Below, one piece after another: positions 23,920 to 64,000 of a stretch of 64,000 nt of DNA. Location: the sequence record PV261925.1; one strand, given 5' to 3'. Numbering within the stretch: position 1 is the stretch's first letter; each line of letters starts with the position of its first letter. A program made the position numbers and the translations under genes. Below the pieces are notes generated by a model. The model had not been told where the DNA came from. It was given only the letters and a program-made list of their open reading frames with translations, and ran no database searches.

Positions 23920-24151
23920 CTTCGAATACCTCATCGTAGTCAGGGAGTGGAGGAAGTCTTTCCTCCGTCTTTACGTATGCACCAGGATCAGAATACACCT
24001 CCGATTCCAATGCGTCAAGTAGAAGTCTGAGATTTCTGATGATTAATTTAAGATTGTCTTTTTCCATAAAAAAAGGGGACCTATGTCCCCAGTCTAACAG
24101 ATTATTGAACAAGTGACAAGTCACTTGACGTAAGTGCGTCCACGGTAGCAA
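23909..24151 (-). CDS. hypothetical protein (likely start MEKDNLKLIIRNL)
   Basis: ORF track; the N-terminal extension overlaps a terminator hairpin, so the true start is probably later. Confidence 0.55.
   Translation of the reverse strand: MLPWTHLRQVTCHLFNNLLDWGHRSPFFMEKDNLKLIIRNLRLLLDALESEVYSDPGAYVKTEERLPPLPDYDEVFEDDE
24066..24092 (-). terminator. rho-independent terminator after the DUF4278 gene
   Basis: GGGGAC-ATAG-GTCCCC followed by a T run on the minus strand. Confidence 0.7.
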
Positions 24152-24288
24152 AATGTTCCGTGGGTTTCATTTTTCTCTTCACAGTGTACATCATACTCAA
24201 CACCACGATATGCAGTGTGAGAAATCTGTGCGTCGTGAAGTGCAGATGCTTTGTTGATCTGCTTCTTGATCATGTTCAGTGTGTTCAT
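24121..24288 (-). CDS. DUF4278-family small protein (55 aa, two YRG motifs)
   Basis: Hand-translated MNTLNMIKKQINKASALHDAQISHTAYRGVEYDVHCEEKNETHGTFCYRGRTYVK; SD AGGAG. Confidence 0.8.
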   Translation of the reverse strand: MNTLNMIKKQINKASALHDAQISHTAYRGVEYDVHCEEKNETHGTFCYRGRTYVK

Positions 24289-24299
24289 GAGTTTACTCC

Positions 24300-24538
24300 T
24301 GAAATACTAGGGATTTTTACCCCGTTCCTTCAGTCGTGTGCGTCCCTGATACACCTCATTCCATGACTGCCGACAAGTTTTTTAAGAATTTGAGTCTTAG
24401 ACTTATCAGAAAGATATGGATCTTCCATAACCACATCTATAACTTCCTTCACCGACTCACAGGACATTGGATGTTCTGAAGCAGTTGCAGGAGTGAATAG
24501 AAGTAGAAGGAGTATGAAGTATTTCATGGGATGAACGA
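24300..24538 (-). ncRNA. Downstream-peptide (glutamine-II riboswitch)-like aptamer, split by an ORF in its P2 loop
   Basis: 5' half TCGTTCATCCC (24538-24528); 3' half GGGACGCACACGACTGAAGGAACGGGG...TTTCAG; P1 CGTTC/GAACG, P2 TCCC/GGGA, pseudoknot CTGAAG/TTTCAG next to the SD. Confidence 0.6.
24330..24527 (-). CDS. small secreted/membrane protein (65 aa, signal peptide, two Cys)
   Basis: MKYFILLLLLFTPATASEHPMSC...MRCIRDAHD. Confidence 0.7.
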   Translation of the reverse strand: MKYFILLLLLFTPATASEHPMSCESVKEVIDVVMEDPYLSDKSKTQILKKLVGSHGMRCIRDAHD

Positions 24539-25111
24539 TTAGAGTGATTTTTTCCAGCGACGAATAGAAGTATGAGATGTTTGATAAACTTCTGCAAGTT
24601 TTCTAATGGGTAAAGATAAAATAGATTCATCTTTACTTACATCTTTTAGAAAGTCATCATACATTTTACCTCTGGTATATGTTATGGATTTAGTAGTAGC
24701 GTATTCTTTTGGATTACGACTTCTACCTTTCCACCACCCAGAAGGAATGTCATTCTCATAAACTACTCGTTCATTTTTACCGTCAGTAATACGAACTTTA
24801 CCAAAACAGGGATTGCCTCTACCAATTCGTTCTCCCTGAGAACAGAAAGAAAATGAAGAAGATGTTTGCTTTGCCCTATTAGCAAAGTGAGGATTAGTAT
24901 CAACTTGATAAAACTCATGGAGTTTTACTTCCGCTTCAACTGCTTCCTCTCTCGTAGCATGTTCGGTAAGAATGATTTTAGAGGAAGGATTAAATGTTTT
25001 GTCTCCATAGGAACCAAAATAATTATCCTCCACTGGATTACACTCACATCCTCTGCTACCAATGTAGCCTCTCCCAAAGGGTTCGTAAGAGTAGTAAGTG
25101 TAATAAATCAT
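24539..25111 (-). mobile_element. free-standing GIY-YIG (Seg-like) homing endonuclease
   Basis: YYTYYSYE..GRGYIGSR...REEAVEAE...FAN; C-terminal NUMOD-like GKVRITDG...GWWKGR and HTH segments. Confidence 0.8.
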
Positions 25112-25125
25112 TCTAATTGCTTACG

Positions 25126-25170
25126 CTCCGTTCCGCGACTTACTTGCGTCCAGTTACCTGGATGAACGAC
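25126..25170 (-). ncRNA. glnA (glutamine-I riboswitch)-like aptamer
   Basis: GTCGTTCA-TCCAG-GTAA-CTGGA-CGCAAGTAAGTCGCG-GAACG: P1 CGTTC/GAACG, P2 hairpin, GCAAGTAA junction. Confidence 0.55.
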
Positions 25171-25176
25171 AGGTCT

Positions 25177-25205
25177 ATTATAGACCACTGTAGTTATTTA
25201 GTCAA
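25177..25205 (-). promoter_or_regulatory. sigma70-type promoter driving the riboswitch-like leader
   Basis: TTGACT-N17-TATAAT, ending 7 nt before the aptamer. Confidence 0.75.
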
Positions 25206-30231: not shown

Positions 30232-30345
30232 TTTGAACAAAAAAGTAAGACCATCAGGGAAATGGTGGAGTTACTATTTCCTCGTACCCTTAACGAGGAT
30301 ATGAAAGACGTGTTTATACTCCCTAGAGGTCTTGGTTTAAGGGGA
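30232..30345 (-). ncRNA. structured psbA 5' leader (PhotoRC-II-like)
   Basis: Hairpins CCTCGT-TAAGGGT-ACGAGG and ACCAT-TTCCCTG-ATGGT; wording matches my recollection of cyanophage psbA leaders. Confidence 0.55.
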
Positions 30346-30380
30346 GTTTAGGTAAGTCAGGAAACCCTGACCTGTCCATG

Positions 30381-60729: not shown

Positions 60730-60812
60730 GTACTCAGGCTCGCCAAGTTATTTTTATCACTGAGTAATAACTAAATCTCAGGCGGGGAGAGATCCCATCC
60801 GCACCAACTAAT
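60730..60812 (-). ncRNA. wcaG-like RNA motif
   Basis: TTGGTGCGG...CCGC, CTGAG-loop-CTCAG with the loop AGTTATT pairing downstream AATAACT, TGGCGAGCC; family name from recollection. Confidence 0.5.
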
Positions 60813-60935
60813 CTTTGGAGAATTAGTAAACTCAGTTGGGTCCAGTGACTCCACCACTTAGTTTTACGAACTAAGAAACGCGGGATTGAAGGGGCCTCCC
60901 TTCACCGACCAGTGCTGTTATAGTCCCTCCGTGAC
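60813..60935 (-). ncRNA. manA-like RNA motif
   Basis: Follows a mannose-6-phosphate isomerase gene; hairpins GAAGGG/CCCTTC, CTTAGTT/AACTAAG; GGTGGAGTC..GGACCC; family name from recollection. Confidence 0.45.
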
Positions 60936-62055: not shown

Positions 62056-62128
62056 TGGGGGATGTGGGGATCGAACCCACCTTTCTCCTGTTATGAGCAG
62101 GGTGCTTTCACCAGAGAGCTAAACCCCC
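62056..62128 (-). tRNA. tRNA with CAT anticodon (elongator Met or Ile2)
   Basis: Cloverleaf, CT-CAT-AA loop, GTTCGAT; no initiator features; T-T mismatch in the acceptor stem. Confidence 0.8.
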
Positions 62129-62132
62129 AAGG

Positions 62133-62204
62133 TAGGACTGCTGGGAATTGAACCCAGGTCACACCGTTATAAGCAGTGGGCCTTAACCGTTAGGCGACAG
62201 TCCC
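62133..62204 (-). tRNA. tRNA-Ile(TAT)
   Basis: GGGACTG/CAGTCCT acceptor stem; CACTG-CT-TAT-AA-CGGTG. Confidence 0.88.
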
Positions 62205-62377
62205 TAGGGAGCTTCGTTATTATTATTTGTATACATGTCTATTAAAGGATCATCTGCTGGTATCATTACTGCAGCAGATCCATTCTCATTAACTATCCCT
62301 ATATGTTCTCCATCTTCTACTCTTTGTATCAGTTCATCCCATCTCTCTTGAAATTCTTGCACCGTGAAGACTTCCAT
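62204..62377 (-). CDS. Phd/YefM-antitoxin-like small protein (57 aa)
   Basis: Hand-translated MEVFTVQEFQERWDELIQRVEDGEHIGIVNENGSAAVMIP. Confidence 0.6.
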   Translation of the reverse strand: MEVFTVQEFQERWDELIQRVEDGEHIGIVNENGSAAVMIPADDPLIDMYTNNNNEAP

Positions 62378-62412
62378 AATTGATAATATTTAGTGGGGGA
62401 TTGGTTACCCAA

Positions 62413-62486
62413 TCGGAATGACAGGATTCGAACCTGCGACCCCTGCTTCCCAAAAGCAGTGCTCTACCAAACTGAGCTACATTCCG
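62413..62486 (-). tRNA. tRNA-Pro(TGG)
   Basis: CGGAATG/CATTCCG; CTGCT-TT-TGG-GA-AGCAG. Confidence 0.93.
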
Positions 62487-62573
62487 TGGCGGAAAGGGTG
62501 GGATTCGAACCCACGGTGCTACTAACACGACAGTTTTCAAGACTGTTGCCTTAAACCACTCGGCCACCTTTCC
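62487..62573 (-). tRNA. tRNA-Ser(TGA), CCA encoded
   Basis: GGAAAGG/CCTTTCC; CT-TGA-AA; long variable arm. Confidence 0.93.
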
Positions 62574-62610
62574 GTGTGTCTTATCTATCATACCACATCT
62601 AGTGTGGTTG

Positions 62611-63168
62611 TCAAGTATAAGTATATGCGATTGTCATTCTTGGATGTTTACTTAGAACATTGGGAGCAAACCCCATGTGTTCCAAATGTGCAGGGAATAA
62701 CACTGCGTCGTTAGGAATGAATGATTGATAAAGATATTCTTTGTCTTCAGTCATTACAACAAACTCACCTCCCCATACACTATTCCAAGAAGGATTCGCA
62801 AAAATTAAAAGAGTCCAACTTCCAAATGAGCCATCAGTATGAAAGGTAGACTCTTGACCAAAAAACTGAATGTTGGTATTAACTCTATTTAATGTCAGAT
62901 TTTGTTTGATAATTTTCTGACACTGATACTTGAGTAGAGTACCATACTTAATCAGTGTAAGGTTATCACCAATGGTATTGAATTTTGATAATGGTTTCAT
63001 CAAACATCCCATATTGGGATGGTCTTCCTCATAACTATCGTTCTTGGTGAATCTCCAGGTATTGTATTTTGAATCCAGTTCGTCGTTCAGTAAAAAGAAA
63101 TCCTTTGTATCAAGTATGTTCTTAATACGATAGATGTTATCTTTGACTTCAACGAACCTCAAAATCAA
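62611..63168 (-). CDS. 2OG-Fe(II) oxygenase (prolyl-hydroxylase-like)
   Basis: FHTDG...WNSVWGGEF...NDAVLFPAHLEHMG...RMTIAY. Confidence 0.8.
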   Translation of the reverse strand: MILRFVEVKDNIYRIKNILDTKDFFLLNDELDSKYNTWRFTKNDSYEEDHPNMGCLMKPLSKFNTIGDNLTLIKYGTLLKYQCQKIIKQNLTLNRVNTNIQFFGQESTFHTDGSFGSWTLLIFANPSWNSVWGGEFVVMTEDKEYLYQSFIPNDAVLFPAHLEHMGFAPNVLSKHPRMTIAYTYT

Positions 63169-63397
63169 GTCTCCTCACTTTTCTTTTTCTCCTCTCTTCC
63201 TGATAGGAGAGATCAGAGTTACTAAGGAAACTTTTTGGAATTGTTTCCTTATTGGATTCTACCATCACTACTTTAGACAAGTCAACTGCAGTAACCTTGT
63301 CTTCAATTACCGTCATCATATTGGGACAACCACAACAATGTGTGTGATGGTCACTTCGGATTTCTTTGTTACACTGTTTGCATCTTACAGTAATCAT
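63149..63397 (-). CDS. small Zn-ribbon hypothetical protein
   Basis: VRCKQCNKE...CCGCPN...AVDLSKV. Confidence 0.7.
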   Translation of the reverse strand: MITVRCKQCNKEIRSDHHTHCCGCPNMMTVIEDKVTAVDLSKVVMVESNKETIPKSFLSNSDLSYQEERRKRKVRRLDFEVR

Positions 63398-63419
63398 GGG
63401 TCATGTTTGTAATTCGATA

Positions 63420-63491
63420 TGGGAGTTACAAGATTCGAACTTGTGACCAATTGCGTGTAAAGCAACTGCGCTACCGCTGCGCTAAACTCCC
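63420..63491 (-). tRNA. tRNA-Val(TAC)
   Basis: GGGAGTT/AACTCCC; TT-TAC-AC. Confidence 0.92.
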
Positions 63492-63497
63492 TCAAGG

Positions 63498-63579
63498 TGG
63501 GTGGTCTTGGATTTGAACCAAGGTAGGCAGAGCCAATGGATTTACAGTCCATCTCCTTTAACCACTCGGACAACCACCC
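63498..63579 (-). tRNA. tRNA-Tyr(GTA)
   Basis: GGGTGGT/ACCACCC; CT-GTA-AA; long variable arm. Confidence 0.92.
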
Positions 63580-63582
63580 TAA

Positions 63583-63655
63583 CTGACCCACCAGGGCTCG
63601 AACCTGGGACAGGCTGATTAACAGTCAGCTGCTCTACCAACTGAGCTATAGGTCA
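63583..63655 (-). tRNA. tRNA-Asn(GTT)
   Basis: TGACCTA/TGGGTCA; CT-GTT-AA. Confidence 0.92.
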
Positions 63656-63846
63656 TTGGATTTTTCCTCTTTGGCGGTCTTGAAGTAAAGTTTGTAATAC
63701 CGTTGTTTCATTTCTGAAATGGTATTCATGTCCTCTTCGTACCCCATGTATTTAAGGAGTTGAAAAGAACCCTCAAGTTCACTGATCAATCTTAACATAT
63801 TGATTGAAGATCTGTCAAGACCTCCAAACTCATACTCTTTACTCAT
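63646..63846 (-). CDS. hypothetical protein (66 aa) between tRNAs
   Basis: MSKEYEFGGLDRSSINMLRLISELEGSFQLLKYMG; SD AGGAGG. Confidence 0.7.
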   Translation of the reverse strand: MSKEYEFGGLDRSSINMLRLISELEGSFQLLKYMGYEEDMNTISEMKQRYYKLYFKTAKEEKSNDL

Positions 63847-63862
63847 AAACCTCCTAGGAGGA

Positions 63863-63935
63863 TGGAGAATAGGAGACTCGAACTCCTGACAGCCTGCTTG
63901 CAAAGCAGGTGCTCTACCAACTGAGCTAATTCCCC
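63863..63935 (-). tRNA. tRNA-Ala(TGC)
   Basis: GGGGAAT/ATTCTCC with G3:U70; TT-TGC-AA. Confidence 0.93.
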
Positions 63936-64000
63936 TGGAGCCTCTGACAAGATTTGAACTTGCGACCTGAGCTTTACAAAAGCCCTGCTCTACCACTGAG
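63936..64000 (-). tRNA. tRNA-Thr(TGT), 5' end outside the window, CCA encoded
   Basis: GGGCT-TT-TGT-AA-AGCTC; GTTCAAAT; ends ...AGGCTCCA. Confidence 0.85.

Follow-up and report, generated by a model that had tools for sequence, protein, structure and literature searches.

The 64,000-nucleotide (nt) window analysed here, taken from sequence record PV261925.1, carries on its minus strand a long leader RNA upstream of a small gene that is probably related to the DUF4278/IF17 family, in a region 100% identical to the Synechococcus phages RB11-B and S-B43 (T4-like cyanomyoviruses, Kyanoviridae). This leader is one nested fold, namely a glutamine-riboswitch core with a second copy of the same core inside one of its stems, and the arrangement is found at approximately 330 related loci. 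An initial annotation, made from the sequence of the window, had described two glutamine-riboswitch-like aptamers in tandem. That description is partly supported: the kind of element was recognized correctly (a phage glutamine-riboswitch leader of an IF17-like gene, containing an embedded open reading frame (ORF) together with a homing endonuclease gene), whereas the architecture was not.

Covariation and the nested fold

The leader contains two CGUUC and two GAACG strands, which can be paired in two registers. In the tandem register, each half of the leader closes its own P1 helix; in the nested register, the outermost strands (5' CGUUC and 3' GAACG) form outer P1, and the two strands between them make up the inner hairpin. 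Nine divergent cultured phage records, selected from the spread of tblastn matches, have an invariant core and thus gave no covariation information, and informative variation came only from IUPAC-exclusion scans of IMG/VR. A first scan had returned five loci with GCAACG...CGUUGA middle strands and unaltered outer strands; scans excluding the canonical base yielded many more such loci, as well as a second class in which CGUUUA at the 5' end accompanies GAAACG at the 3' end. Among the 228 complete loci, where counts measure consistency with a register, the junction-proximal pair of outer P1 is C-G in 212 and U-A in 16, the corresponding pair of the inner hairpin is G-C in 117 and C-G in 111, and neither shows a single mismatch. 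At the same positions, the tandem register is mismatched in 111 loci for the first unit and in 112 for the second. The strand combinations are CGUUCA/GGAACG/CGUUCA/GGAACG (116 of the 228 loci), CGUUCA/GCAACG/CGUUGA/GGAACG (95), CGUUUA/GCAACG/CGUUGA/GAAACG (15) and CGUUUA/GGAACG/CGUUCA/GAAACG (one). Two tandem aptamers, each closing its own P1, are contradicted by these data, since the first 5' strand shows changes that compensate those of the last 3' strand, and one middle strand changes that compensate those of the other.

The helix that joins the two halves is P3, which covaries as G-C in 218 loci (AGUCG/CGACU), A-U in 69 (AGUCA/UGACU) and U-A in three (AGUCU/AGACU), with few wobbles and five mismatches. 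The complementarity of AGTCG (25140-25136) and CGACT (24336-24332) had been mentioned in the initial annotation as a mere aside, and proves to be this covarying helix. A metagenomic sequence included in the alignment of Weinberg 2010 shows AGUCA...UGACU as well. In our spliced alignment A1 (85 distinct rows), all five pairs of P2(1), the P2-type hairpin of the outer junction, have changes on both sides, and 97.3% of the cells of the nested structure are paired; not one of 500 shuffles of this alignment came up to the real data by any measure, and the paired share drops to 28-47% in slid controls. On the same alignment, the tandem structure differs solely in that the covarying pair becomes unpaired cells.

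Further properties point in the same direction. The nearest-neighbour energy of the compact relative L013 is -25.7 kcal/mol for the nested structure versus -18.6 kcal/mol for the tandem one, and the inner hairpin loop measures 3-4 nt in 232 of 241 loci. The E-loop strands, within ACGCAAGUA-AGUCG and CGACU-GAAG, are invariant in the 85 distinct rows, and AGUA and GAA meet on both sides of P3 in the nested fold only. The three-way junction P1/P2/P3 of the glnA RNA (RF01739) is hence recovered with covariation support. The outer junction reads, in order, P1, A, P2(1), ACGCAAGUA, P3, GAAG and P1. At the far end of P3 lies the inner junction, composed of a C-G pair, the GAACG-loop-CGUUC hairpin, A, P2(2) and ACGCA(A/C)A. 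It is a circular permutation of the same core with P3 in common, and retains CGUUCA, the U-A and C-G pairs closing P2, GACGCA, and GAACG followed by G. A paralogous unit at two other loci (L170 and L152) is built in the same way, with a 7-bp P3 of unrelated sequence (GAGCAUA/UAUGCUC).

Layout of the locus

The features of the locus are listed below, all coordinates being window positions on the minus strand (-).

25177..25205 (-): sigma-70-type promoter, TTGACT-N17-TATAAT, 11 of 12 consensus positions
25168-25129 (-): first unit ('aptamer 1'), CGTTCA-TCCAG..CTGGA-CGCAAGTA-AGTCG-C-GGAACG, with CGCAAGUA in the RNA form
25164..25168 (-): outer P1, 5' strand CGUUC; partner GAACG at 24323-24327, approximately 840 nt downstream
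25149..25162 (-): P2(1) hairpin, UCCAG-GUAA-CUGGA; short here, with a 65-75-amino-acid (aa) ORF in other phages
25141..25149 (-): J2/3, the strand joining P2 to P3, ACGCAAGUA, whose AGUA is one half of the E-loop; invariant in alignment A1
25136..25140 (-): P3, 5' strand AGUCG; partner CGACU at 24332-24336
25129..25134 (-): inner hairpin, first strand GGAACG; partner CGUUC at 24533-24537
24539..25126 (-): homing-endonuclease cassette, 588 nt, in the inner hairpin loop; 15-nt leader and 190-aa ORF (24539-25111)
24532..24537 (-): inner hairpin, second strand CGUUCA, pairing with the first strand GGAACG
24538-24528 (-): TCGTTCATCCC (RNA UCGUUCAUCCC), directly 5' of the ATG (24527) of the 65-aa ORF
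24330..24527 (-): 65-aa loop ORF; hydrophobic N-terminus, two Cys
24322..24346 (-): GGGACGCACACGACTGAAGGAACGG (RNA GGGACGCACACGACUGAAGGAACGG), covering the last five codons of the loop ORF (R-D-A-H-D) and its TGA; its parts are GGGA (P2(2), 3' strand), CGCACA (inner J2/3), CGACU (P3), GAAG (J3/1, other half of the E-loop), GAACG (outer P1) and G
24310..24323 (-): small variable hairpin 3' of the aptamer, GGGG-UAAAAA-UCCC
24296..24304 (-): expression platform, UUUCAG fused to the Shine-Dalgarno (SD) sequence GGAG; TTTCAG at 24304-24299 is the complement of CUGAAG at 24328-24333
24121..24288 (-): DUF4278/IF17-like gene, 55 aa, two YRG motifs
24068..24090 (-): intrinsic terminator, GGGGAC-AUAG-GUCCCC followed by U7

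The promoter, aptamer motifs, ORFs, CTGAAG/TTTCAG pair and terminator of the initial annotation were thus all found where it had placed them. The same promoter stands at the same distance in phages S-B05, Sf-CH5 and S-SM2 and in IMG/VR loci, and transcription would be expected to start a few bases ahead of outer P1. The loose pattern CGTTCA..CGCA..GGAACG occurs once in the 64-kb window, versus 0.01 occurrences expected by chance. The parts of the aptamer are separated by inserts of 588 nt and 187 nt, and the DUF4278-like ORF starts 34 nt past the aptamer.

Relationship to glutamine riboswitches

Searched as a whole at the Rfam gathering threshold, the window gave no match to a glutamine family, because the inserts separate the parts. 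Of the window's leader, only the first 46 nt were scorable; the first unit, which they contain, reaches 27.6 bits for Glutamine (threshold 35) and 24.8 bits for Glutamine-II (threshold 33); the range for 'aptamer 1' alone is 27.6-28.5 bits with the Glutamine model, and Rfam searches of S-B05, Sf-CH5 and S-SM2 returned sub-threshold matches only, to the first unit. Four insert-free orthologues (L102, L013, L022 and L095) score 46.4, 43.6, 39.6 and 35.6 bits, respectively, against the Glutamine threshold of 35. The Rfam alignment of these four builds P1 from the first CGUUC and the last GAACG, and P3 from AGU and ACU, leaving a 38-41-nt insert in P3, and the threshold is reached in the nested register only. 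Agreement with the Rfam Glutamine consensus aCGGAAGUA extends to J2/3. Assignment to Glutamine-II (RF01704) is not borne out, with 24.8 bits for the window and 29.8 bits for S-SM2 (threshold 33) and with strands that close a nested P1 accompanied by P3.

These comparisons support the view that the RNA is a relative of the glutamine riboswitch and a variant of the known class. The earlier proposal, a phage RNA of this kind in front of a DUF4278/IF17-like gene, is supported. Like the glnA RNA (RF01739, type 1, upstream of cyanobacterial gifB/IF17), the phage RNA has P1 CGUUC/GAACG, P2, ACGnAAGUA, P3 and GAAG in a three-way junction with an E-loop, a DUF4278/IF17-like gene downstream, and an SD-overlapping region that pairs with the 3' side of the aptamer. 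Unlike in the glnA RNA, P3 of the phage element opens into a second, permuted junction instead of a loop cap, and the P2 loops carry translated genes with start and stop codons in the stems. The core differs as well: it reads ACGC...GAACGG in the phage (25141-25149 and 24322-24327) versus the ACGG...GAACGC consensus of RF01739, the C...G combination being the one found in the Glutamine-II consensus. We take these two positions to be the long-range G-C pair of the solved structure, in which case the phage would have the pair swapped. The glnA motif carries an 'Eloop' flag (Weinberg 2010). Marine Synechococcus hosts were reported with the type 2 motif only (Klahn et al. 2018, PMC6212724), whereas the phage element is type 1-like.

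With the Glutamine-II or Downstream-peptide RNA of marine picocyanobacteria (RF01704), the phage element shares CGUUCA, a P2-like hairpin, CGCA, GGAACG followed by G, the C..G version of the core, and short DUF4278 ORFs downstream. However, CGUUC/GAACG of RF01704 is a pseudoknot in the loop of the second hairpin, whereas the phage strands close an ordinary P1, with P3 and an E-loop. Tandem riboswitches (glycine, or the tandem glnA of Weinberg 2010) likewise have two core copies per leader, which might provide two ligand sites, but the phage copies are nested, have one helix in common and interleave their P1-type strands.

Genes within the P2-type loops

An IMG/VR pattern scan for the 3' core returned 120 loci. 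Counted over this first, unbiased scan, the second P2-type loop carries an ORF in 114 of 124 loci and the first in 36, the latter position being occupied in Sf-CH5 also. In 104 of these 114 loop ORFs, the AUG lies 4 nt past CGUUCA and the stop codon is the UGA or UAA of CGACUGA/CGACUAA, and thus the C-terminal D-A-N/H-D is encoded by the riboswitch core. In the window, accordingly, the last five codons and the TGA of the 65-aa ORF are riboswitch core, and UCCC (24528-24531), just 5' of its AUG, pairs with GGGA (24343-24346). S-SM2 has a different loop ORF of 55 aa, whose final W-D-A-N-D and stop codon fall on the conserved RNA core. Nearly all loops have a length of 1 mod 3, and the differences among them are almost solely multiples of three. 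Approximately ten loci have short hairpins at both P2 positions and no ORF; since insert-free alleles exist, the ORFs are optional residents of the loops.

The stems are maintained around these genes. Across the ORF, the fourth pair of the long-range P2(2) is C-G in 55 rows and U-A in 23. In P2(1), the start codon contributes its A to a pair with the U of the stop codon, and the UGA, UAA and UAG stop codons of the 3' strand are matched by UCUCA, UCUUA and UCCUA, respectively, on the 5' strand.

In three length classes, analysed without the dual-coded tail, the loop ORFs have a ratio of nonsynonymous to synonymous substitution rates (dN/dS) of 0.24-0.27, and they match PHROG 504 and 6471 (phage families whose function is unassigned there). 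All are hydrophobic at the N-terminus and contain an invariant Cys, with another Cys approximately 35 residues further on, and an iterated profile search from the window ORF, lenient and against a small database, reaches 251 of 251 distinct loop ORFs. In the 65-aa protein, the N-terminus (K, FILLLLLF, then ATA|S) is a plausible putative signal peptide. The structure model of this protein is a helical hairpin (helices 23-35 and 41-55; predicted local distance difference test (pLDDT) 86-96) with Cys23 and Cys59 at the ends. Judged from their sequences, the loop ORFs are shown by these results to be genes of one conserved two-cysteine small-protein family. The translated ORF proposed by the initial annotation within a P2-type loop is upheld by the fixed start and stop positions, a dN/dS of about 0.25 and the PHROG matches. 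It is also reasonable to suppose that translation is coupled to folding, the AUG and the final codons being located in the stem.

The homing endonuclease gene

A homing-endonuclease gene between two CGUUCA..GGAACG units, as initially annotated, is indeed present as the 588-nt cassette at 24539-25126, which ends on the ORF's own stop codon. The 190-aa ORF matches PHROG 314 'homing endonuclease' (E = 1e-8). In S-B05, with flanks 99.5% identical, exactly 588 nt are absent: the empty site is precise (GGAACGGA|TCGTTCA), GGAACGGA being followed directly by UCGUUCAUCCC-AUG, and the uninterrupted S-B05 DNA includes GTCGCGGAACGGATCGTTCATCCC. Sf-CH5, which has ORFs in both P2-type loops, encodes an endonuclease protein 98.9% identical to that of the window within different flanks and background, and six more IMG/VR loci carry the gene in a CGUUUA/GCAACG background. 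Altogether, endonuclease-bearing alleles make up nine of 241 parsed loci. By this behaviour, the ORF is a free-standing mobile homing endonuclease gene, with cleavage as a predicted activity, and in this phage the cassette is a recent acquisition.

The fold of the enzyme is less clear-cut. The 190-aa protein has no Pfam match at E <= 1, a PDB sequence search returned noise only, and Foldseek with its model found nothing at E < 0.001. The best PDB match (E = 0.97) is a UPF0213 protein, from a family that we take to be of GIY-YIG type. The model (pLDDT 81) has strands at 2-9, 15-22 and 44-51, a helix at 54-67 and a helical C-terminal part; the invariant residues Y4/Y6, Y16-I17-G18, E61 and N78 are compatible with GIY-YIG and do not prove it. 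Relatives of the endonuclease carry NUMOD3 or PF22083 only. Of the earlier 'GIY-YIG ORF', the homing endonuclease is thus retained on the strength of PHROG 314 and mobility, and GIY-YIG, with suggestive motifs and strand order but no Pfam match and no significant fold match, is a candidate label. The F-CphI (Endo VII-type) family was also considered and rejected: a 58%-identical match in S-PM2 overlaps the F-CphI and hypothetical-protein features, and the window protein is devoid of the CX2-4C/DHDH/CX2C motif.

Like the free-standing homing endonucleases of T4-like phages (seg/mob, F-CphI of S-PM2), this gene is a compact cassette between conserved sequences, polymorphic for presence and absence, with near-identical copies in divergent backgrounds, a decayed remnant and NUMOD3-type motifs in relatives. 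Unlike for those genes, the target is the DNA of a riboswitch hairpin loop and not a protein-coding gene, and unlike F-CphI, the window endonuclease has no Endo VII DHDH motif and no Pfam match, only GIY-YIG-like motifs.

Several neighbouring observations concern this cassette. Locus L057 (IMG/VR) has, between GGAACG and CGTTCA, a 64-nt remnant with the first and last cassette bases (GAGCGTAAGCAATTAGAATGATTTATTGCACTTACTACTCGTCGCTGTAAAAAATCACTCTAAT), a sequence pattern that shows apparent gene loss by internal deletion. Beside the insertion, the P2(1) loop has 12 nt in the window (25149-25162) versus 45 nt in S-B05 (L001, 1237-1287), two genomes otherwise 99.5% identical here, and the spacer past the -10 box differs by one base between them; both differences are possibly a flank co-conversion tract left by homing. 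In L170 and L152 (IMG/VR), the divergent second nested unit lies approximately 250-1100 nt downstream of the first and has in its first P2 loop a 173-182-aa HNH-type endonuclease ORF, which runs through J2/3 into P3 (stop TAA). The last strand of the first unit is changed to GGAACA in these loci, and the target is partly duplicated (ACTGAAGGAA).

Expression platform and downstream gene

On the 3' side of outer P1, a small variable hairpin, yUUyA-GGAG and the start codon follow in that order. The hairpin measures 14-47 nt across loci, some of which have an additional hairpin. CUGAAG, made of the last two P3 bases and GAAG, faces CUUCA, UUUCA, CUUUA or UUUUA, all of which are compatible with pairing (wobble included), and the variant CUAAAG faces CUUUA in 24 of 24 cases. 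The CUGAAG/UUUCAG helix is present in the minimum free energy (MFE) fold. This pairing covaries, and the helix would represent an OFF state in which the first base of the SD is sequestered. It cannot coexist with the full aptamer, because it has nucleotides in common with P3 and the E-loop. The pairing beside the SD that the initial annotation had seen is consequently real, and its interpretation as a pseudoknot fails, as the helix competes with P3 and J3/1. Transcription attenuation by the GGGG..CCC hairpin and its U-rich tail was considered unlikely, the stem having 4-5 pairs and varying widely in length and sequence.

The 55-aa protein of the window matches PHROG 545 (E = 5e-36) and scores 22.0 bits (E = 2e-4) with Pfam DUF4278 (PF14105), below the 25.3-bit cut-off. 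Genes in the same position at other loci reach 29.5 and 32.3 bits, and its relationship to the DUF4278 family is likely because these positional orthologues pass the cut-off. Two types of gene follow the same RNA (e.g. at scan loci L253, L257 and L256): one of 54-55 aa, as in the window (MNTLN..ALHDAQI..YRG..CYRG), and one of 35-49 aa with a higher DUF4278 score (M(A/S)xVTYRGVxYD...YRG).

Distribution and previous reports

The DUF4278-like gene was detected in 371 phage records, and the riboswitch element in 13 of the 13 phage genomes inspected; the layout is shared even by S-SM2, at only approximately 77% identity. When a collection with a single genome for each prokaryotic species was scanned, it yielded six true copies, all on contigs of metagenome-assembled genomes (MAGs) or of contaminant type, with cyanophage-style promoters and genes, and no recognizable cyanobacterial chromosome was among these six. 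Cyanophage-type copies in records labelled as cellular include L343 (a Synechococcus MAG, 194-kb contig), L347 (a Nonlabens xiamenensis assembly, 188-kb contig), L348 and L349 (a Euryarchaeota MAG), which are probably binned or contaminating cyanophage contigs. A cellular origin of the element was rejected, all six copies from the genome collection being on cyanophage-like contigs.

Glutamine riboswitches, their link to DUF4278/IF17, their tandem occurrence and their presence in T4-like cyanophages have already been published. Tandem glnA RNAs were reported by Weinberg 2010, whose alignment presents an ORF-bearing metagenomic example as a lone first aptamer with the remainder as flank. According to riboswitch surveys, phages seldom employ such elements, and McCown 2017 counted only two glutamine aptamers in cyanophages. 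A 99-nt, 44-bit glnA match reported for phage S-CREM1 is probably a compact nested copy. In the literature consulted, outside the scope of which lies Ames & Breaker 2011, we found no description of a nested two-junction fold, of genes in aptamer loops or of an endonuclease gene in a riboswitch.

Elsewhere in the window are a PhotoRC-II RNA (30266-30359, -; 75.7 bits, threshold 39), a wcaG RNA motif (60732-60835, -; 66.4 bits, threshold 42) and an array of at least nine tRNA genes (62056-64000, -), the last of which is cut at the window end.

Proposed mechanism and alternatives

Overall, we consider it probable that one promoter drives a leader RNA that holds a single glutamine aptamer of the glnA type, nested and with gene-bearing loops. 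Without glutamine, CUGAAG would pair with UUUCAG next to the SD and block translation of the DUF4278/IF17-like gene; glutamine would stabilize P3, the E-loop and P1, release the SD and turn the gene on. For cyanobacterial gifB, glutamine binding releases the ribosome-binding site and acts as an ON switch (Klahn et al. 2018, PMC6212724). Thus, glutamine would be expected to switch on the phage gene, whose product may in turn inhibit glutamine synthetase. The folded state would also hide the AUG of the loop ORF, and a ribosome on that ORF would sit on nucleotides of the stem and the core, so that the RNA could not have this ORF translated and adopt the ligand-competent fold at the same time. A more ambitious version adds reciprocal control of several cistrons by one sensor and a second glutamine site at the inner junction, the two junctions sensing cooperatively through their common P3. 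The bound fold would then hide the start codons of the two-cysteine proteins and expose the IF17-like SD, and ribosomes on the embedded genes would block sensing. We regard this version as rather unlikely.

A number of points weigh against the proposed mechanism. The window RNA, with its 588- and 187-nt inserts, is beyond the reach of the Rfam model, and its membership comes through orthology to the compact alleles; glutamine binding by the phage RNA is likewise something that we infer from this kinship. The variant scans were deliberately biased and many loci are related, so that their counts do not represent frequencies or independent events, and each compensatory class may derive from few events. 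Taken alone, the platform hairpin is no more stable than shuffled sequence (z = -1.4), and the cassette in the inner loop may slow or impair folding in this phage. A second glutamine site is doubtful: the inner junction is devoid of an E-loop, and the strands joining its helices are unlike those of the outer junction and lack conservation in the L170 paralogous unit. Besides binding glutamine, the inner junction might act as a scaffold or compete for P1 strands. Lastly, four of the five P1 pairs of the tandem register can still form, and a fold obtained by strand exchange is therefore conceivable.

The reading closest to the initial annotation, with two independent tandem aptamers, the endonuclease gene in their linker and the ORF in the P2 loop of the second, draws on the fact that each half has CGUUCA, a P2 helix, ACGCA and GGAACG, on the weak Rfam matches of 'aptamer 1' alone (27.6 and 24.8 bits), and on the tandem glnA RNAs and the metagenomic example aligned as a single first aptamer in Weinberg 2010. 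However, its junction-proximal P1 pair would be C.C, U.C, G.G or G.A in 111-112 of the 228 loci, whereas every cross pair is Watson-Crick; the P3 that connects the halves covaries, neither half alone has P3 or both E-loop strands, the Rfam threshold is attained solely by the nested register, and a linker of 3-4 nt suits a hairpin loop. We judge this reading extremely improbable. A switch by strand exchange between the nested and the tandem-like register, with glutamine choosing and the inner module being a competitor rather than a second sensor, would cost one pair only. It would fit the fact that the divergent paralogous unit retains the inner GAACG/CGUUC hairpin among otherwise different inner strands, and the RNAfold MFE of the compact RNA, which combines the inner hairpin and the platform helix. 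Yet no pair of the tandem register has covariation support, the sole varying pair goes against that register, and the known mechanism of the class works without such an exchange (Klahn et al. 2018, PMC6212724), which renders this switch quite unlikely.

It could also be that the element is a relic in this phage, its aptamer broken by the cassette and the ORF, with DUF4278 expressed constitutively or coupled to termination at the UGA in CUGAAG. Co-transcriptional folding would be slow over the 588 and 187 nt between the parts, a ribosome that terminates there would mask CUGAAG and leave the SD, 30 nt downstream, accessible, and the endonuclease-bearing alleles are rare, as noted above. Nevertheless, every conserved nucleotide is intact in the window copy, the endonuclease gene occupies a loop, a position in which inserts do not necessarily interfere with pairing, and most alleles of the unbiased first scan bear the ORF. 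As these alleles keep P2(2) paired by compensatory changes, selection acts on the RNA fold while the ORF is present, and we hold a relic to be very unlikely.

Implications for marine cyanophages

The nested double junction, with its common P3, is well supported as an architecture that tolerates, and apparently exploits, translated genes within its helices. It offers a natural aptamer with a permuted copy of itself inside P3, stems that span translated ORFs of 150-230 nt, and stop codons whose identity covaries with the opposite strand. This is a rare and directly testable case of overlapping constraints on RNA structure and protein coding, and of competition between translation and riboswitch folding. 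If true, the reciprocal control of several cistrons and the cooperative twin-junction sensor would both be unprecedented among natural riboswitches. The locus further presents a homing endonuclease that exploits riboswitch-encoding DNA as a conserved target.

Covariance models miss the phage element because genes sit in its loops, and a layout common in marine cyanophages has in this way been overlooked by standard RNA searches; searches permitting large loop inserts may reveal more riboswitches of this kind. For the phages themselves, the element points to a sensing of host nitrogen status early in infection, and makes it probable that marine cyanophages manipulate the glutamine synthetase of their hosts.

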